DNA of 64,000 nucleotides from NCBI GenBank assembly GCA_965655095.1, contig OZ296651.1:3658001-3722000 (forward strand), read 5' to 3'. A model generated the notes under the pieces. The model saw only the letters and a list, made by a program, of their open reading frames with translations, had not been told where the DNA came from and did no database searches. How positions within the stretch are numbered: position 1 is the stretch's first letter; the number at the start of each line of letters is the position of its first letter. The translations under genes and the position numbers were made by a program. Of this stretch, positions 28,001 to 39,200 are shown one piece after another. The DNA comes from Haplodiscus bocki. Lineage: Eukaryota.

Positions 28001-31000
28001 CGTCAGAATGTAATGGTAATCACATTTTATATAAAACACGAAAAGCACCATCAAACGTAAAGATGCAAGAAAACTGAAAGTACTGCCTTTCAGACAGTTT
28101 CAGATGTCAAGACCAAACAATCATCCGAAATTCCAGCACATATCTAGAAGATGACGTCTAAAAACAACACCAATCTCGACAAAAAAGATTCATCCCATCG
28201 TGAAAAAATCAGCGTTCACGCTTTCAAAAATTCATATTAAACACGGGAAACCTCATTAAACGAGAATCATTGCTACGAGCCATGAAAAACAACACAAAAA
28301 ATGCAGCTGTCAACTGACTGTCGAAAGCTAGGCTACCAAGAGGCCAAAAACAAGTGGTAAACAAGTAAACTCCGTTGCAGGAAAAACCAGCCGTATATGG
28401 GTAACCGGCAGAAAAACGCAGGCATGATGTTACAAAAACAGACAATAATTTTCTCAACAATTAGATTTTCTCAATAAACAATCAAAGCCTCAACATAGTT
28501 GAATATGCTAGCAAATCAAACAAGGTATAACCTGTAAGACACTTCAGATAACAGGAAAAACTAATTATCCAAATCAAACCAGCTATCTGGAAAAAAACGT
28601 CTAGAAACAACATCAATCTCAACCATAAACATGCATTCCAACGCGATAATTTCAGATCTATATGCCATTCATTATTCACAAGGAACACGGGAAACATCAT
28701 TATCCGACACAAACTTCTGAGTTGTCACAAAATAAACCCCTAAGACACGAAAACAAGGGCAAAAACAAATGTATTGCACATACAACTATTTCGAAGCAAA
28801 ATTCAGCCGTAGCTCGGTAAGACAGAAAAAAAGAAAATATTTCAGAAAAGAGTATCATTCTTATTAGACACACAAAACACCATCACATGTAAAAATGCTA
28901 AAAAAAATATGGTACTGCCTTCCAGATACCGTCAAATATCGAAGACAAGCAAAGATAAAAACAAATTCAGAAATATGGAAAGTGACGTTTTACTACACTA
29001 TACCTGGACAAAAAATGCATCCCATCATGAAGTGTTTGGATCTATACTTTCATCATTTTCAGATGCAACCCGGGAAACCTTGGCAACTGACAATATTAGC
29101 AGAGTGGTCACAAAAAACAGCAGCAAAATTACTCAACGCCAGCTGAGTGTCGAAAAACAGTCGACCAAGAGGCCGAAAACAGGTGGACTACATGTAAAAT
29201 CGTTTGAACCAAACTTCAGCAGTGAATCGGTAGCCGACAGCAGAAAAATGTCAGAATGCCAGGGTAATCATTTTTTTCAATGAAACACGAAAAACACTAT
29301 CAAATCTAAAGATGCAAGAAAACTAAAAGTACTGCGTTTCAGACAGTTTCAGATATCAAGAACAACCAATCATCCCAAATTCTAGGACATATCTCGAAGA
29401 TAAACGTCTCGAAACAGCAGCAACCTCGCCAATAAAGATGCAAGCCACCGTGCAAGAATCAGATCTACACGCATATAAATATTCATAACAGACACGGAAA
29501 ACCTCATCAACCGAGAACCACTGCTACGGAGCCATGAAAAACCCCACTAATAACGCAGCGCTGAGTGTCGAAAACTAGATTACTAAGAGGCCAAAAACAG
29601 GCGGTTACAAGTAAACTCCATTGATGGAAAAACCAGCCGTATATGGGTAACAGGCAGAAAAATTCAAACATGATAATACAAAAAATGACAACAATTTTCT
29701 TAACAAATAAATTTTGATACTACTCTAAAAAGGCTCATCATAGGTAAATATGCTAGACAATCAAACAATCTACTACTTCAGACACTCACAGATATCAAGA
29801 ACAACCAATGATCCAAATCAAACCAGATATCTGGAAAATGACGTCCAGAAACACAACTAATCTCGACAATAAACACTCATCCTACCGTGAAAAAAAAACA
29901 GATCTTCACGCTTTTAAAAACTCATATTAAACAGGGGAAACCTCATTAACCGAGAATCATTGCTACGGTGCCATTAAAAACAACACAAAAAATGCCGCTC
30001 TAACCAAGTGTCGAAAACTAGGCTACGAAAAGGCCAAAAACAAGTGGTTTACATGTAAACTCCGTGAAAGGAAAAACCAGCCGTATACGGGTAACAGACA
30101 GGAAATAGCCAACATGATATTACAAAAAAAAAAGACATTTCTTGACAAAAGAATTTTCATATTACACTCAAAGCCTCAACACAGTTAAATATGCTAGCAT
30201 TAAATATGCTAGCAAATCAAACAAGGTATAACCTGTCAGACACATCAGATAACAAGAACAACTAAAATCAGAACAATCCAAAAAAACTTTAAAAGAACGT
30301 CTGGAAACAACATCAATCTCAACCATAAACATACATTTCAACGCGCTAATCTCAGATCTATATTCCATTCAAAAATCATATGAAACACGGGAAACATCAT
30401 TAACCGACACAAACTTCTGAGTTGTCACAAAATAAACCCCCAAGACACGAAAACAACGGCAAAATCAAATGTATTGCACAAAAAACTATATCGAAGCAAA
30501 ATTCAGCCGTAGCTCGGTAAGACAGAAAAAAGCAAATACTTCAGAAAAGAGTATCATTCTTATTAGACACACAAAACACCATCACATGTAAATATGCTAA
30601 AAAAACATGGTACTGCCTTCCAGATACCGTCAAATATCGAAGACAACCAAAGATAAAAACAAATTCAGAAATATGGAAAATGACGTCTTACAACACTATA
30701 CCTGAACAAAAAATGCATCCCATCATGAAGTGTTTGGATCTCTACTTTCATCATTTTCCAATGAACCCGAAAAACCTTAGCAACCGACAACTTTCGGAGA
30801 GGGGTCACAAAAATAACCAGTAAAATTATGAAACGCCAGCTGAGTGTCGAAAAATAGTCAACGGAAAAGCCGAAAAGAGGTGGACTAAATGTAAAATCGT
30901 TTGAAGCAAACTTCAGTAGTGAATCGGTACCCGACAGCAGAAAATGTCAGAATGCCAGGGTAATCATTTTTTTCAATGAAACACGAAAAAAACTATCAAA

Positions 31001-31931
31001 TCTGAAGATGCAAGAAAACTAAACAAAGTACTGCCTTTCAGACAGTTTCAGATATCAAGAACAACCAATCATCCCAAATTCTAGGACATATCTCGAAGAT
31101 AAACGTCTCGAAACACCAGCAACCTCGCCAATAAAGATGCAAGCCATCGTGCAAGAATCAGATCTACACGCATACAAATATTCATAACAGACACAGGAAA
31201 CCTCATCAACCGAGAACCACTGCTACGGAGCCATGAAAAACCCCACTAAAAACGCAGCGCTGAGTGTCGAAAACTAGATTACTAAGAGGCCAAAAACAAG
31301 CGGTTACAAGTAAACTCCGTTGATGGAAAAACCAGCCGTATATGGGTAACAGGCAGAAAAATTCAAACATGATGATACAAAAAATGACACGACAAGTTTC
31401 TTAACAAATAAATTTTCATACTACTCTAAAAAGCCTCATCATAGGTAAATATGCTAGACAATCAAACAATCTACTACTTCAGACACTCACAGATATCAAG
31501 AACAACTAATGATCCAAATCAAACCAGATATCTGGAAAATGACGTCTAGAAACACAACTAATCTCGACAATAAACACTCATCCTACCGTAAAAAAAACAG
31601 ATCTTCACGCTTTTAAAAACTCATATTAAACAGGGGAAACCTCATTAACCGAGAATCATTGCTACGGGGCCATTAAAAACAACACAAAAAATGCCGCTCT
31701 AACCAAGTGTCGAAAACTACGCTACGAAAAGGCCAAAAACAAGTGGTTTACATGTAAACTCCGTGAAAGGAAAAACCAGCCGTATACGGGTAACAGACAG
31801 GAAAATGCAAACATGATATTACAAAAAAAAGACATTTCTTGACAAAAGAATTTTCATAATATTACGCTCAAAGCCTCAACACAGTTAAATATGCTAGCAT
31901 TAAATATGCTAGCAAATCAAACAAGGTATAA
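13021..31931. repeat. Satellite family B, left arm (monomers ~380-440 bp; 4-monomer ~1,697-bp HOR, 3-monomer ~1,248-bp unit, 4,638/6,335-bp superperiods)
   Basis: The motifs AAACACGGGAAACMTCATYAACCGA, GAGTGTCGAAAA, ACATGTAAA and TTCAGATATCAAGAAC recur about every 420 bp. ORF offsets are 16809/18506/20203 (1,697), 17288/21926 (4,638), 20203/26538 and 20642/26977 (6,335), and 27234/28482 (1,248). Confidence 0.95.
31928..31931 (+). repeat. Target-site duplication ATAA (left copy; right copy at 35630-35633)
   Basis: The empty site in sister monomers is ACAAGGT-ATAA-CCTGTCAG (e.g. ~30221-30239). Here the left flank ends ACAAGGT-ATAA and the right flank starts ATAA-CCTGTCAG. Confidence 0.7.
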
Positions 31932-32003
31932 ACAAATAAATAAATAAATAAACATTTTATTATTCTGGAAAAAATATCCAAAATACAAAGACACACTACA
32001 CCT
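31932..32003 (-). other. LINE 3' UTR: small stem-loop, AATAAA and (TTTA)n microsatellite tail
   Basis: The minus strand reads ...TTTTGGA TATTTTT TCCAGAA TAATAAAATG TTTATTTATTTATTTATTTGT. The stem (31983-31963) has one G:U pair. Short-repeat tails are typical of CR1/L2-group elements. Confidence 0.75.
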
Positions 32004-34619
32004 TTACAAAAAGTACACTCCCAAGCATCTGTTGGGGAAAATGCGGTGAGTACGACCTGCAATTGACGGCGGATGCCGATCTCTCAGGTGGGTACTTGCA
32101 TAATCAGTTCTTGATGGAATGAGGCTGTGAAGTGGGTGCTGGGGGTACTTGAGGCACTTGTTGAGCAGACGCTGATCTCTGTCAATGGAAACTGAATGGA
32201 TATCCTTGAATTCGTCGATAATTCCAAGGTGAACACATCTCCTTTGCAAAGAGTCAATGCGATTCAATTCTGTGTTAGATACTGATGCATATGCTTCAAT
32301 CCCATATATCAGTGTGGATAGAATGAACGCATTGTACAGTCTAGATAACTCAAGCTTATTGTAACCAAGGCGCTTAAGCTTCAGAAGAAGATATACATTA
32401 CGTCTGGCTTTGGATATCAAGTAATTAATATGGTTGCTCAGGGACATTGTGTTCGACACCATTATACCAACGATGTTCATTTCGGTAACTCTGGTAACAT
32501 CGGGAAACGCTGAAGGCAAAATAGTGTTTCTTGAAAGTTTGATCACTAATTCTTTCGATTTCGAACAGTTGAGGACGAATCCGTTGTTGTAGCACCAGTT
32601 TTTCACAAAGTCTAGCACTTTTTCAGCATCGTCGTCACCATTTTTGCCAGCACAGCAAGGATAGTTATCATCCGCAAATTTAACTAAGCTGTTTCGTAGA
32701 GTAAGCTCCGAAGGAAGCATAAATGATAGAGTAGATATATTGAAATATTTGGGGCCCCCAACAGTCCCTTGAGGAACGCCTTGATTAATACTAAGCCACT
32801 GCGAAGGTTTGCCGTTGCTAACAACTTTCTGTTGTCGGTCGCGCAAGAAGCTTGCAATCCAGCAAACAATGTTCGGATCCGCTCCAATATTGTTAAGGGA
32901 ACTCACAATTAATTGATGGCTAACTCTGTCAAAGGCTTTAGATAAATCTAATGAAATAATTCTGACGTAATCATAATTGTTTTCTTTATAGCATTGGATA
33001 ATATTCTGCACCTTAACAACCATTGTAGATGTTGAACCGTGTTGACGAAACCCAAACTGACTGCTGTCTAGCTTCCAATGATATAAATCGGATATAAAGA
33101 ATCTATCGACAAGTCTTTCAAAGATTCGGGCTACAACAGGAGTTATTGACATTGGACGTAAGCTATCTATCCGCGGAGGTGTCGTCTTCGGAAGAGGTGT
33201 AACAATAGCACGCTTCCAAATCGCAGGAAAAATTCCTTGCCTCAAACTTTCGTTAAAGATAACATGGACAACAGGAGTGAGTATATGAGCAAATTCTCGG
33301 AATACATACCAAGGTATGTTGTCACTACCACAAGCGGTACGACTGACTGACGACAATCCATAGTAAACTTGGTGTAATGATAAGCTCGGTGTATCTTTCA
33401 ATTTCAGTGCAGGAGTTTCTGGTAGTTTGTAATTAGAAGTGGTGCAAATATCTGCGAACATTTGGTTTATTGAGTTAACATCAAACTCGAGAGGAATAGT
33501 TGTTGGCCTTTGTTTACCAATGTAATTCTTGGTTTTATTCCACCATAACTTTGTGCCAATTTTCTGTTCGTTATGCTTTGTGTTGTCTATAATTAAGTTG
33601 CCGATTCGTTTGCTGAGTAACTCAACTTCATGCCATCGCTGATGCCGAACAAGACGTTGCTTCCGCTTCAAGAGTGTCTTTATAAGTGGTGTCATGTAAG
33701 TAGGGTCGCGAGATTTGATCGTTACTTGCTTCTCAGGGCAGGCAGTATTAAGTGCACTTTGGAGAATTTCTGTAAGTTGTTCTGTAGCCGCATTGATATC
33801 ACTGTTTGCTAATTGCGCGACGCTTTGGAAGTCAGTAGTACACAGCATGCTGTGCAGCAATTGCATATTTCTGGCTCTACAGTCCCGCAAAAGTTTCACC
33901 TGCCTTGTACTGGGTAATCTTTCACGGGGCGAACATACAATTCCGAAGTGATCAGTTTTGAATGTCATCTTTGTGAGGAGTATGTCGTCATAATAATATG
34001 GATGAGACGTAAACACGTAATCCAATACACTCCGTTCTCTAGTATTTCTGGTGTTAAGGGAACATAGCGACGTACTTCCGAGTAACTTAGATACTGGGAA
34101 TGTATTGAAATCGCCAGCAACCACCACAATTCTATGATCCGTATTATCAAGAAATGTATCGCACGTAGATGTGATGTGTTCAAGTAAGTCGGCTTGTTTA
34201 GTAGTTGACATGTCAGGCGGTACATAAATACAACATAGCAATAAGGGACGTTTGGCGTATACCTGAAGCCATAGATTTTCGAAGACTTCCGACTGTTCCG
34301 GATATTTCTGAATACATCTGACGTTTTTGTGAGTGTATATACAAACTCCTCCACCAGAAGATTTTTGAGAATTTAATGCAGTGCGGTCTGAGCGGTAACA
34401 GTCGAAGCCTGGGATACAAGAGAACCCATCTATAATCTCACTAGTAAACCAGGTTTCAGTAACAAAGCAAATATCTATGTCCAACGATGATAATTCAGCA
34501 GCTAAAAGCGACAATGCAATGTCTTTTTTCAGCGATCTACCATTGGTGAGCAGTAATTTAGGAACAGAGATATAAGTTGGTGCAACTGTTGGAGTTGATG
34601 TCGATGTGGGCTGAGATAG
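32004..34619 (-). CDS. LINE ORF2: apurinic-like endonuclease (APE/EEP) + reverse transcriptase, ~871 aa open frame (the track's 836-aa call starts at an internal TTG, 34514)
   Basis: APE motifs: LLTNGRSL (upstream of the called start), FVTETW, YRSDR, GGGVCIY, IYVPP, AGDFN, VLDYVF, TDH. RT motifs: GSDNIP, WKRAIVTPLPK, RPMSIT, QFGFR, LDLSKAFDRV, GVPQG, FADD, LNCSKS. The C-terminus contains HPLH. The frame is uninterrupted. Confidence 0.96.
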   Translation of the reverse strand, partial: LSQPTSTSTPTVAPTYISVPKLLLTNGRSLKKDIALSLLAAELSSLDIDICFVTETWFTSEIIDGFSCIPGFDCYRSDRTALNSQKSSGGGVCIYTHKNVRCIQKYPEQSEVFENLWLQVYAKRPLLLCCIYVPPDMSTTKQADLLEHITSTCDTFLDNTDHRIVVVAGDFNTFPVSKLLGSTSLCSLNTRNTRERSVLDYVFTSHPYYYDDILLTKMTFKTDHFGIVCSPRERLPSTRQVKLLRDCRARNMQLLHSMLCTTDFQSVAQLANSDINAATEQLTEILQSALNTACPEKQVTIKSRDPTYMTPLIKTLLKRKQRLVRHQRWHEVELLSKRIGNLIIDNTKHNEQKIGTKLWWNKTKNYIGKQRPTTIPLEFDVNSINQMFADICTTSNYKLPETPALKLKDTPSLSLHQVYYGLSSVSRTACGSDNIPWYVFREFAHILTPVVHVIFNESLRQGIFPAIWKRAIVTPLPKTTPPRIDSLRPMSITPVVARIFERLVDRFFISDLYHWKLDSSQFGFRQHGSTSTMVVKVQNIIQCYKENNYDYVRIISLDLSKAFDRVSHQLIVSSLNNIGADPNIVCWIASFLRDRQQKVVSNGKPSQWLSINQGVPQGTVGGPKYFNISTLSFMLPSELTLRNSLVKFADDNYPCCAGKNGDDDAEKVLDFVKNWCYNNGFVLNCSKSKELVIKLSRNTILPSAFPDVTRVTEMNIVGIMVSNTMSLSNHINYLISKARRNVYLLLKLKRLGYNKLELSRLYNAFILSTLIYGIEAYASVSNTELNRIDSLQRRCVHLGIIDEFKDIHSVSIDRDQRLLNKCLKYPQHPLHSLIPSRTDYASTHLRDRHPPSIAGRTHRIFPNRCLGVYFL

Positions 34620-34622
34620 TCA
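34617..34622 (-). promoter_or_regulatory. Candidate stop-codon readthrough signal TGA-CTA between ORF1 and ORF2
   Basis: Plus-strand TAGTCA reads TGACTA on the minus strand. It is the only stop between the ORF1 C-terminal frame and ORF2 (34622-34514 = 108, in frame). UGA-CUA is an established leaky-stop context. Confidence 0.7.
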
Positions 34623-34823
34623 CGATAGATCTACTTCCGATGTAACATCTTTGCCGTCAACATACAATCTCAAGCTTCTAACCTTTATGCGTCGTGAGTC
34701 AGTACCGCTGTTTATCAATTCCCGCCGATGACGTAGCAGTGTGTTTTCAATTTTTATTTGGGAAGGTGAAAGGCCTCGCGAAAGAAACACACGGTCCTTA
34801 AAGTCTTTCAGTAGGTAGGCTTT
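34620..34823 (-). pseudogene. Frameshifted C-terminal part of ORF1 (67 codons, +1 frame), ending at TGA 34622-34620
   Basis: Manual translation gives KAYLLKDFKDRVFLSRGLSPSQIKIENTLLRHRRELINSGTDSRRIKVRSLRLYVDGKDVTSEVDLS*. This resembles the LINE ORF1 C-terminal domain pattern (VFI..DL[ST].....L...R......G......L.V.G). It is in the same frame as ORF2. Confidence 0.82.
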
Positions 34824-35529
34824 AGACTTTTCTCATCTCCCACTCATTCTGGCATGTCACTAAGATCGTACGAGGACGGTCTATACCTTTTTCTTTCTTC
34901 ATTTGACCAAGTCGCTTGATGTTGGTGAAGCTCGTTGAAGTTCCCAAAAATTCGAAAATTTCCTTAACTGAGTTCTCTTCGGCCGACATGATTTCTTCAG
35001 ATCTTCTGTTTGTTGATTCCTTTACACCATCAATGCGAATTTGGCGTGGGTAATCCTCATTGTTGCTTCGTAGATCCGTTTGAGGCGGGGTGTGTGAATG
35101 GGCAATTCGTGGTTGTTGCTGTAAACTAGTCGAAATTTCCAATATTGAAGATTTAATTTCTTTGAGAGAATTCTCAAGTTGCTGGGGTAGCCCGTCATTC
35201 GATACGACTTCGGCCTGTTGCATCTTCTTTTGTTGAGAAAGTGATTCCGTGAGAAGAGCTTTAAGCGCTTTGGGATTCTTAGTTAGTACTTGCAACTGTT
35301 CTTCAACTCGTTCCTCGCTGAGAGCGAGAAGCTCAGCTATAGTTGGTATATTTCCAAGTACCTTGATTTTGGAGAACGGTACCTTGGTATCGAAGCGATC
35401 AGGCCATCCTTGATAGTGCACCAGTGCCTCGTTGTTAGATGCAAAAGTCTCTAATATCTTTGCTGGATAGTAGCGGTTGTCTTGAAGATCGATGGCGCTA
35501 ACCAACTGGCCCGATTTCCAGTCTGTCAT
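34822..35529 (-). CDS. LINE ORF1 (N-terminal 235 aa): Tudor-knot/chromo-barrel-like domain, coiled coil, RRM-like region; cut short by a frameshift
   Basis: ATG in GCTGCCATGA context. Residues 4-56 read W..GQLVSAID....YYPAKIL...LVHYQGWPDRFD..V...I. Heptad-like segments follow (LENSLKEIKSSILEISTSL), then the L1/CR1 ORF1-type motifs IRIDGVKE, KRLG and RPRTILV. Confidence 0.88.
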   Translation of the reverse strand: MTDWKSGQLVSAIDLQDNRYYPAKILETFASNNEALVHYQGWPDRFDTKVPFSKIKVLGNIPTIAELLALSEERVEEQLQVLTKNPKALKALLTESLSQQKKMQQAEVVSNDGLPQQLENSLKEIKSSILEISTSLQQQPRIAHSHTPPQTDLRSNNEDYPRQIRIDGVKESTNRRSEEIMSAEENSVKEIFEFLGTSTSFTNIKRLGQMKKEKGIDRPRTILVTCQNEWEMRKV

Positions 35530-36299
35530 GGCAGCAGATTATCACCGGGGTTGTTCACTCGGTACCCCACCGGGCCATGCTCTGAAACTATTTAATAAGT
35601 TTATCACAACAATTAGGCTGTCACAACAAATAACCTGTCAGACACATCAGATAACAAGAACAACTAAAATCAGAACAATCCAAAAAAACTTTAAAAGAAC
35701 GTCTGGAAAGGACATCAATCTCAACCATAAACATGCATTTCAACGCGCTAATCTCAGATCTATATTCCATTCAAAAATCATATGAAACACGGGAAACATC
35801 ATTAACCGACACAAACTTCTGAGTTGTCACAAAATAAACCCCTAAGACACGAAAACAACGGCAAAATCAAATGTATTGCACATAAAACTATTTCGAAGCA
35901 AAATTCAGCCGTAGCTCGGTAAGACAGAAAAAAGCAAATATTTCAGAAAAGTATCATTCTTATTAGACACACAAAACACCATCACATGTAAATATGCTAA
36001 AAAACATGGTACTGCCTTCTAGATACCGTCAAATATCGAAGACAACCAGAGATAAAAACAAATTCAGAAATATGGAAAATGACGTCTTACAACACTATAC
36101 CTGAACAAAAAATGCATCCCATCACGAAGTGTTTGGATCTCTACTTTCATCATTTTCCAATGAACCCGAAAAACCTTAGCAATCCACAACTTTCGCAGAG
36201 GGGTCACAAAAATCACCAGTAAAATTATGAAACGCCAGCTGAGTGTCGAAAAATAGTCAACCGAAAAGCCGAAAAGAGGTGGACTAAATGTAAAATCGT

Positions 36300-39200
36300 T
36301 TGAAGCAAACTTCAGTAGTGAATCGGTACCCGACAGCAGAAAATGTCAGAATGCCAGGGTAATCATTTTTTTCAATGAAACACGAAAAACACTATCAAAT
36401 CTAAAGATGCAAGAAAACTAAAAGTACTGCGTTTCAGACAGTTTCAGATATCAAGAACAACCAATCATCCCAAAGTCTAGGACATATCTCGAAGATAAAC
36501 GTCTCGAAACACCAGCAACCTCGCCTATAAAGATGCAAGCCATCGTGCAAGAATCAGATCTACACGCATATAAATATTCATAACAGACACGGGAAACCTC
36601 ATCAACCGAGAACCACTGCTACGGAGCCATGAAAAACCCCACTAAAAACGCAGCGCTGAGTGTGGAAAACTAGATTACTAAGAGGCCAAAAACAAGCGGT
36701 TACAAGTAAACTCCGTTGATGGAAAAACCAGCCGTATATGGGTAACAGCCAGAAAAATTCAAACATGATAATACAAAAAAAAGACAAAATAATTTTCTTA
36801 ACAAATAAATTTTCATACTACTCTAAAAAGCCTCATCATAGGTAAAAATGATAGACAATCAAACAATCTACTACTTCAGACACTCACAGATATCAAGAAC
36901 AACCAATGATCCAAACCAAACCAGATATCTGGAAAATGACGTCCAGAAACACAACTAATCTCGACAATAAACACTCATCCTACCGTGAAAAAAAAACAGA
37001 TCTTCACGCTTTTAAAAACTCATATTAAACAGGGGAAACCTCATTAACCGAGAATCATTGCTACGGGGCCATTAAAAACAACACAAAAATTGCCGCTCTA
37101 ACCAAGTGTCGAAAACTAGGCTACGAAAAGGCCAAAAACAAGTGGTTTACATGTAAACTCCGTGAAAGGAAAAACCAGCCGTATACGGATAACAGACAGG
37201 AAAATGCAAACATGATATTACAAAAAAAGACATTTCTTGACAAAGGAATTTTCATAATATTACACTCAAAGCCTCAACACAGTTAAATATGCTAGCATTA
37301 AATATGCTAGCGAATCAAACAAGGTATAACCTGTCAGACACATCAGATAACAAGAACAACTAAAATCAGAACAATCCAAAAAAAACTTAAAGAACGTCTG
37401 GAAACAACATCAATCTCAACCAAAAACATGCATTTCAACGCGCTAATCTCAAATCTATATTCCATTCAAAAATCATATGAAACACGGGAAACATCATTAA
37501 CCGACACAAACTTCTGAGTTGTCACAAAATAAACCCCTAAGACACGAAAACAACGGCAAAATCAAATGTATTGCACATAAAACTATTTCGAAGCAAAATT
37601 CAGCCGTAGCTCGGTAAGACAGAAAAAAGCAAATATTTCAGAAAAGAGTATCATTCTTATTAGACACACAAAACACCATCACATGTAAATATGCTAAAAA
37701 ACATGGTACTGCCTTCCAGATACCGTCAAATATCGAAGACAACCAAAGATAAAAACAAATTCAGAAATATGGAAAATGACGTCTTACAACACTATACCTG
37801 AACAAAAAATGCATCCCATCATGAAGTGTTTGGAACTCTACTTTCATCATTTTCCAATGAATCCGAAAAACGTTAGCAACCGACAACTTTCGCAGAGGTG
37901 TCGCAAAAATCACCAGTAAAATTATGAAACGCCAGCTGAGTGTCGAAAAATAGTCAACCGAAAAGCCGAAAAGAGGTGGACTAAATGTAAAATCGTTTGA
38001 AGCAAACTTCAGTAGTGAATCGGTACCCGACAGCAGAAAATGTCAGAATGCCAGGGTAATCATTTTTTTCAATGAAACACGAAAAACACTATCAAATCTA
38101 AAGATGCAAGAAAACTAAAAGTACTGCGTTTCAGACAGTTTCAGATATCAAGAACAACCAATCATCCCAAATTCTAGGACATATCTCGAAGATAAACGTC
38201 TCGAAACACCAGCAACCTCGCCAATAAAGATGCAAGCCATCGTGCAAGAATCAGATCTACACGCATATAAATATTCATAACAGACACGGGAAACCTCATC
38301 AACCGAGAACCACAGCTACGGAGCCATGAAAAACCCCACTAAAAACGCAGCGCTGAGTGTCGAAAACTAGATTACTAAGAGGCCAAAAACAAGCGGTTAC
38401 AAGAAAACTCCGTTGATGTAAAAACAAGCCGTATATGGGCAAGAGGCAGAAAAACGCAAACTGGATTATACAAAATTGACAAATTGATTTTCTTAACAAA
38501 TAAATTTTCATATTAAACATTTAAAGCCTCATCATGATAAATACGCTAGCAAATTAAAAAAAGTACTACCTCTCAGACGACTTCAGATATCAAGAACAAC
38601 TAATTATCCAAATCAAACCAGATATCTGGAAAATGACGTCTAGAAACACTACTAATCTTGACAATAAAGCTTCTTCCTATCGTGAAAAAACTAGATATTC
38701 ACGCTTTTAAAAATTCATACTAAACACGGGAAACCTCATTAACAGAGAATCATTGCCACGGATCCATGAAAAACAACACAAAAAAGCAGCTCTAACTGAG
38801 CGTCGAAAACTAGGCTACCAAAAGGCCAAAAAAATGGTTCACATGAAAACTCCGTTGAAGGAAAAACCAGCCGTATATGGGTAACAGGCAGAAAAATGCA
38901 AACATGATGTTACGGATGTTAGAAAAAAAAGACATTGATTTTCGTAACAAAGAAAAAATTTTAAGGTAAACAAGGCATAACCTGTCACGCATTTCAGATA
39001 TCAAGAACAACTAAGTTTCCAGAACAATCCAAAAAAACTCAAAAAAAAACGTCTAGAAACAACATCAATCTCAGTCTTCAAGATGCAATTCAACATGCTA
39101 CTTCCAGATCTATATGCAAATCATTATTCATATGAAACACGAAAAACATCATTAACCGACAAAAACTTCGAGTGGTCAAAAAATAAACAACTAAAACAAA

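Follow-up and report, generated by a model that had tools for sequence, protein, structure and literature searches.

An in-frame UGA-CUA junction without an ORF2 start codon, and its predicted readthrough, in a LINE family of Haplodiscus bocki and its relatives

The LINE copy at the locus and its family

The stretch of Haplodiscus bocki DNA analysed here (64,000 nucleotides; GenBank assembly GCA_965655095.1, contig OZ296651.1, positions 3,658,001 to 3,722,000 of the forward strand; hereafter the window, whose own coordinates are used throughout) carries on its minus strand a copy of a long interspersed nuclear element (LINE). The copy runs from ~35619 to ~31930, its 5′ limit being the start of similarity to other copies and its 3′ limit a (TTTA)n tail. 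Its first open reading frame (ORF1) is separated by a single TGA, followed by CTA, from a second frame (ORF2) encoding an apurinic/apyrimidinic endonuclease (APE) and a reverse transcriptase (RT), and it is this junction, a candidate site of translational readthrough, that we describe. ORF2 is without an initiation codon of its own, both in the family of the window copy and in the wider group of elements that share an ORF1 module made up of an RNA recognition motif (RRM) and a C-terminal domain (CTD). The features of the window copy are listed below, with codons of ORF2 counted from the CTA as +1.

35530..35619, minus strand: 5′ untranslated region (UTR), ~90 nt; in blastn against other copies, similarity begins at ~35613-35629
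34822..35529, minus strand: ORF1 as read from the ATG at 35529, 235 codons, ending at a premature TAA (34824-34822); from the reading frame
34827..34829, minus strand: point at which 5 bp (coding-strand GTTAT) are deleted in the window copy alone; from a 16-copy alignment and read contigs
34623..34832, minus strand: final 70 ORF1 codons, encoding the C-terminal domain ...IKVRSLRLYVDGKDVTSEVDLS and in phase with ORF2; aligned with four other lineages
34617..34622, minus strand: TGA (34622-34620) and CTA (34619-34617), the ORF1 stop in a type II readthrough context; from the sequence and the lineage comparison
34545..34616, minus strand: Ser/Thr/Pro-rich linker SQPTSTSTPTVAPTYISVPKLLLT, codons +2 to +25; no ATG, an in-frame CTG at +23 in poor initiation context
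34002..34544, minus strand: AP-endonuclease domain, from the catalytic Asn (+26) through ETW and GGGV; Pfam Exo_endo_phos, aa 28-206, E 2e-6
34209..34211, minus strand: earliest ATG in the ORF2 frame, at codon +137 (VPPDM), 3′ of the catalytic motifs of the endonuclease
32544..33191, minus strand: reverse transcriptase domain; Pfam RVT_1, aa 477-692, E 3e-24
32004..34619, minus strand: ORF2 frame, 871 sense codons from the ORF1 stop to TAA-AGG (TAA at 32006-32004); from the reading frame
31930..32003, minus strand: short 3′ UTR with a terminal (TTTA)n microsatellite tail and satellite-like flank beyond; family read contigs begin at 31962

The C-terminus of ORF1, ...VDGKDVTSEVDLS (also given as ...LYVDGKDVTSEVDLS), is followed by TGA, CTA, TCT and CAG, and past the TGA the same frame reads LSQPTSTSTPTVAPTYISVPKLLLTNGRSLKK... 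and remains open for 871 codons. An earlier note on this DNA, made from the letters alone, had described an ORF2 that continues the ORF1 frame with no ATG after TGA-CTA, a Ser/Thr/Pro-rich linker leading directly into the endonuclease, and a first methionine lying beyond the N.RSL, ETW and GGGV motifs. All three descriptions are borne out, the Asn of TNGRSL (+26), the ETW and the GGGV each preceding the ATG at codon +137. Exo_endo_phos and RVT_1 are found within one ORF, each above the Pfam cut-off, which identifies the element as an APE-type non-LTR (long terminal repeat) retrotransposon. Its RT may belong on the CR1/L2 side, as suggested by the (TTTA)n tail, by the lack of an RNase H domain and by relatives with PHD fingers and 2A peptides; the 2A motif D(V/I)ExNPGP itself is absent from the window element.

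Read from its ATG, ORF1 has an N-terminus with weak similarity to chromo-barrel/Tudor domains, together with a coiled-coil region and the beginning of the RRM-like module. The N-terminus resembles MSL3_chromo-like (E 0.006) and Tudor-knot (E 0.026) domains, and the putative chromatin reader of the earlier note depends on these two Pfam matches, both of them sub-threshold. In a comparison of ORF1 with the L1-like type II (Transposase_22 RRM/CTD), no Pfam match was obtained, and the Transposase_22/Tnp_22_dsRBD clusters returned by an Atlas feature search (0.84-0.87) serve as a lead only.

At least 16 copies of the family, 96-98% identical, are present on 8 chromosome-scale contigs of the 1.5 Gb genome, with a common 5′ end near 35619 and a (TTTA)n tail, and the window LINE is a decayed copy of this young, low-copy APE-type family. 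Its defect is the loss of GTTAT (5 bp) between 34827 and 34829; the five letters are present in all 14 other copies covering the site, and contigs of four public runs contain five extra letters at 34827/34828. Because of this deletion the ATG-started ORF1 of the window copy stops after 235 codons, and since no more than the final 70 codons of ORF1 share the ORF2 frame, the window copy cannot make a fusion of the two frames. With the undeleted ORF1 of 304 aa, readthrough would yield 304+1+871 = 1,176 aa, so that the fusion of ~1,170 aa proposed earlier stands as to its size in an undeleted copy and falls for the window copy.

Alignment of the family copies, one of the checks named in the earlier note, supports the layout of the junction. 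The TGA is found in 16/16 copies and the longer TGA CTA TCT in 15/16; the phase between ORF1 and ORF2 is kept in 14/16, the remaining two having indels in the linker. The junction holds no sense codon or ATG, and the frame relationship is retained. The junction TGA is also identical in the read contigs of the 4 runs covering the site, and, as all 16 copies carry it and the read contigs agree, it is not an assembly slip. Both frames are open in four copies, and ORF2 is open for 871 codons in five of the 16. The linker variants common to several copies are one synonymous TCA/TCG change (nine copies) and one Ser-to-Phe change (two copies). One family copy (L051, G000:C4:56862329-56865928) has an ORF2-internal duplication starting from ...CRARNMQLLHSML..., resulting in an open frame given as 1,762 aa.

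Several features of the element's ends and surroundings were also observed. The first ~39 nt of the element (35581-35619) have a read-contig depth of 21,000-106,000, versus 100-1,400 elsewhere in the element, and many read contigs diverge on each side of this piece. From the depth and the two-sided divergence, the piece is common to a far more abundant repeat; it overlaps a 17-bp repeat, TCACAACAAATAACCTG, at 35604-35640. A 15-bp doublet, TTAAATATGCTAGCA, flanks the LINE at 30185-30214, 31885-31914 and 37283-37311, and the flank at 31440-31500 resembles 31880-31920, the LINE being embedded in a long-period tandem or satellite-like array.

The junction in diverged lineages

Twelve lineages with the same type of ORF1 were compared, of which A (the window family) to E reside in the source genome and F to L come from seven other assemblies or runs. 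Lineages B-E were found by searching the source genome with the ORF1 CTD and the endonuclease, the in-genome census consisting of 76 loci together with the coordinates of domain matches. Lineage F, from another assembly, was reached through an ORF2 word search and has no DNA match in the source genome. Word-based protein searches with ORF1, as a single sequence or as a profile, matched only the same family. When the ORF1 RRM+CTD module was used as a profile in an exhaustive search, 3,124 cluster representatives were obtained at E ≤ 0.001 (50%-identity clusters), the best 150 of which are all short, ORF1-sized proteins. Seven of the profile matches were chosen blind to the junction; one (L083) proved to be lineage C in another assembly, while the six others represent new lineages, G-L (L084-L089).

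These lineages are widely diverged. Among lineages A-F the N-termini of ORF2 share 23-41% identity, the endonucleases of B-E are 23-30% identical to that of the window element, and ORF1 identity to lineage A is 20-39% (B, C, E, F). ORF1 is 294 aa long in lineage B and 262 aa in lineage E, both with a PHD-like N-terminus (sub-threshold in Pfam), and 326 aa in lineage C. Lineage F is found in a 12,750-bp contig labelled circular (L079/L080, ENA ERZ25071281), where units of ~2,966 bp follow one another head to tail, each with an ORF1 of 213 aa, TGA-CTA and a truncated ORF2 of 481-487 aa. The junction sequences of all lineages are listed below.

Lineage A (window family): TGA CTA TCT, first in-frame ATG at +137
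Lineage B: TGA CTA TTT, first in-frame ATG at +36
Lineage C: TGA CTA ATA, first in-frame ATG at +85
Lineage C in another assembly (L083): TGA CTA ATA
Lineage D: TGA CTA ACT, first in-frame ATG at +161
Lineage E: TGA CAA CCA, first in-frame ATG at +8
Lineage F: TGA CTA TAC, in phase
Lineage G (L084): TGA CTA, contig ends at the junction
Lineage H (L085): TGA CTA GCA
Lineage I (L086): TGA CTA GGC
Lineage J (L087): TGA CAG TCA
Lineage K (L088): TGA CTA GGC, decayed copy with an additional in-frame TAG 3 codons further
Lineage L (L089): TGA CTA CTT

The ORF1 stop is TGA-C in 12/12 lineages and TGA-CTA in 10/12, while the two others have TGA-CAA-CCA or TGA-CAG-TCA, both of which fit the type I CAR-YYA motif. 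In lineages H, I and K the TGA is followed by CTAG, extended to CTAGGC in I and K, and in the window family by CTA-T. Across 11 representatives, the six positions of TGACTA are retained in 11, 11, 11, 11, 9 and 10, and the 42 flanking positions in at most 8/11, so that the hexamer is retained above any flanking position and its conservation is more than chance. In all 11 lineages with a visible ORF2, that frame is the frame of ORF1. The ORF1 tail past the conserved LYVDG motif varies from 7 to 27 residues and the linker from 9 to 25 codons, with unalignable flanks; as these lengths vary and the frame is held nonetheless, many indels have all kept the phase. Among further pairs of CTD and APE matches in the source genome, 9/10 are in phase, as judged from coordinates alone. 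One decayed lineage E copy (L064, G000:C9:47371482-47375027), which has several upstream stops in ORF1, carries GGA (Gly) in place of the junction TGA.

Automatic gene calls begin ORF2 at its first ATG, which lies 81 codons (L085:1599) and 101 codons (L086:1506) past the TGA, and such late starts cut off the catalytic motifs of the endonuclease. ORF2 of this LINE group is therefore probably mis-annotated in public protein sets.

As a contrast group, we considered relatives found via ORF2 whose ORF1 fails to match the RRM+CTD profile. In one of these (L078), ORF1 ends in TGA-AAT with an in-frame TAA three codons later, and ORF2 has its own AUG; in another (L081), the stop is TAA-TAA and the two ORFs are in different frames. 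Two more are single-ORF elements, with ORF2 25-29% identical to that of the window element. The one from Paramuricea clavata (L077, GCA_902702795.2; 2495-2830) has the 2A peptide DIELNPGP at the start of the ORF, and the other (L082; 4001-4300) has GDIELNPGP followed by a PHD finger, APE and RT in an 866-aa product. The latter arrangement indicates that covalent attachment of a reader domain to the enzyme is viable in the group. The same LINE neighbourhood employs two recoding devices, 2A and candidate UGA readthrough.

Predicted readthrough and its alternatives

From this layout and its conservation we infer that programmed readthrough of the UGA is the likely route by which ORF2 is expressed, giving an ORF1-linker-APE-RT fusion in this LINE family and in the wider ORF1 group. 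The polyprotein that the earlier note had put forward on the strength of UGA-CUA thus gains support from the lineage comparison. Ribosomes would translate ORF1 and for the most part terminate at the UGA, yielding abundant ORF1 protein. The CUA after the UGA, or CAR-YYA in two lineages, would constitute a weak termination context, in which a small share of ribosomes, probably about a percent or a few, would decode the UGA with a near-cognate tRNA and continue across a short linker of unconserved sequence to translate the endonuclease and reverse transcriptase. The resulting fusion would be about 1,176 aa in the window family. Its leak rate would set the ratio of ORF1 to ORF2, comparable to the Gag:Gag-Pol readthrough of gammaretroviruses, and the ORF1 part may tether the enzyme to the ORF1-coated RNA that encodes it.

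What is known of such contexts gives a scale for this proposal. Readthrough in human cells amounts to 1.5% for UGA-CUA alone and to as much as ~31% for UGA-CUAG (PMC4132726). UGA-CUA is the type II readthrough signal of Sindbis virus, O'nyong-nyong virus and PSIV, CAR-YYA is the type I motif of tobacco mosaic virus (TMV), and contexts derived from CUAGGC were among the best, with >15% readthrough, in saturation mutagenesis (PMC13517186).

Readthrough is predicted because the leaky context is retained, the phase is strictly kept and most lineages are without a usable AUG. Reinitiation, entry at an internal ribosome entry site (IRES) and non-AUG initiation do not predict this pattern, as none of them constrains the frame or the hexamer. 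Termination-reinitiation or non-AUG initiation, in which ORF2 would be a separate protein restarted at a nearby AUG or near-cognate codon, is of a kind accepted for other LINEs (PMC5972666, PMC3894237), and family A does offer an in-frame CTG at +23. In lineages E, F, J and L, termination-reinitiation could indeed be used, since an in-frame AUG lies 3-8 codons past the stop, directly ahead of the endonuclease. Elsewhere the sequences lend themselves poorly to it: 7/11 lineages (A, B, C, D, H, I, K) have no AUG ahead of the catalytic Asn, CUA is not a near-cognate start codon, and a near-cognate start for ORF2 was rejected as no such codon is common to the lineages at a fixed place. The window family, with its first AUG at +137, also has no stop-start overlap of the kind seen in SART1-like coupling, and reinitiation past an ORF of ~300 codons is inefficient without a dedicated signal (PMC3894237). 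Reinitiation would further leave unexplained why ORF2 is in frame in 11/11 lineages despite many indels, and why TGA-CTA or CAR-YYA is retained amid drifting flanks. We therefore regard this account as unlikely.

Still less credence, in fact next to none, is given to a UGA that is recoded by other means (selenocysteine, reassignment of the genetic code, or removal through splicing or editing). UGA is the selenocysteine codon and the codon most often reassigned, but a scan of 31000-36500 against Rfam, at E up to 1, gave no SECIS (selenocysteine insertion sequence) or other match. Reassignment of the code is contradicted by the TAA at the end of ORF2 and by the presence of a single in-frame TGA among about 1,176 codons. 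A mini-intron over the stop was rejected, as the sole GT...AG pair around it in family A encloses 13 nt, a length not divisible by three, and family B has no GT there.

Several observations weigh against readthrough, or limit what may be expected of it. It is predicted here from sequence layout, and the element matched none of the public RNA runs searched, the four runs that contain it being sets of contigs with DNA-like behaviour. In the window copy, ORF1 is disrupted by the 5-bp deletion, and the four lineages with an AUG at +3 to +8 have a start codon at hand. The lineages are moreover related by descent, so that the counts given above are not independent trials and the argument is one of retention versus saturated flanks. 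The RNA 3′ of the stop was folded, another check named in the earlier note: stretches of 80 and 150 nt past the stop in six lineages gave z-scores of -0.7 to +1.2 versus dinucleotide shuffles, with nothing stable or conserved. The level of readthrough would accordingly depend on the hexamer alone and could be low. To our knowledge, LINEs are without a protease, and a 135-kDa ORF1-ORF2 fusion is unreported for any animal LINE.

The broken window copy and the lack of a matching RNA run, together with the many copies in every family that have stops or frameshifts, could also be taken to mean that ORF2 is not translated from its own RNA at all. The elements would then be ORF1-only passengers mobilised in trans, or dead, and TGA-CTA a relic. 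An untranslated sequence, however, would not hold an open, in-phase, domain-bearing frame across lineages as diverged as these, nor would the junction hexamer survive in it, and the five young family A copies with a full-length open ORF2 keep their APE and RT domains. Such an origin of the pattern is in our judgement very improbable.

Returning to readthrough, a broader form of the proposal may be stated, for which we put the chances at about even. The whole animal LINE group defined by the ORF1 RRM+CTD module (>3,000 50%-identity clusters) would express its APE and RT only as a context-driven UGA-readthrough fusion of the Gag-Pol type. Assembly of this fusion together with free ORF1 protein on the RNA that encodes it would account for cis-preference as well as for stoichiometry, and the N-terminal module, which is specific to each lineage (Tudor-like here, PHD in B and E), would be linked covalently to the integration machinery.

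Known recoding systems and the translation of LINE ORF2

The proposed arrangement resembles the gag-pol of murine leukemia virus (MLV), in which the polymerase is made as a minor fusion to an upstream structural, RNA-binding protein through one in-frame stop whose leak sets the stoichiometry. MLV, unlike the window element, is an LTR element that uses UAG-GGA and an H-type pseudoknot (type III; PMC13517186) and whose fusion is cut by a protease; here the context is UGA-CUA, with no 3′ structure detected, no protease and a non-LTR element. Closer in context are the alphaviruses (Sindbis, O'nyong-nyong) and PSIV, where the same UGA CUA stands directly before the polymerase-containing part (PMC13517186), although these are RNA viruses, most with an extended 3′ stem-loop, and none was found at the window junction. 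In the vertebrate genes OPRL1, OPRK1, MAPK10 and AQP4, a short UGA-CUAG motif alone drives readthrough (PMC4132726). Those are cellular genes with short C-terminal extensions, whereas here a whole enzyme of 871 aa would be appended, after CTA-T and not CTA-G.

Paramecium has UGA as its only stop codon. Among the germline LINEs of this ciliate, those of Group 3 have ORF1 and ORF2 in one frame, and it has been proposed from consensus sequences that the ORF1 stop is read through (PMC5405496). These elements differ from the present ones in their zinc-finger ORF1, and the accessible part of that paper reports no conserved context and gives readthrough as a proposal only (PMC5405496). The UAAUG coupling shown for SART1, the unconventional termination-reinitiation proposed for human L1 and the StopGo of 2A LINEs are alike in obtaining a low-level second cistron from one RNA, but they yield a separate ORF2 protein. 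Arabidopsis ATLN LINEs are reported to carry an in-frame amber codon between their ORFs (Noma et al. 2000). Zorro3, for its part, depends on the first ATG of ORF2 (PMC1965478).

The solutions adopted for LINE ORF2 translation have been reviewed (PMC3894237, PMC3708506); in the former, which dates from 2013 and deals with the biogenesis of LINE proteins, reinitiation, IRES and 2A are listed and readthrough is not. In our literature search, no paper on readthrough in an animal LINE was found. Both the mechanism and the class of element are known, and it is a conserved, motif-defined readthrough across an animal LINE group that appears to be new.

How ORF2 is translated from a bicistronic LINE RNA is a long-standing open question, for which reinitiation, IRES entry, stop-start coupling and 2A have been recorded (PMC3894237). 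If the present reading is true, readthrough would be a fifth, retrovirus-like solution, and the UGA-CUA rule would extend beyond vertebrates and viruses. ORF2 would then be linked physically with ORF1 and its variable Tudor or PHD module, which would bear on the cis-preference of these elements, on their ratio of ORF1 to ORF2 and on their choice of target.

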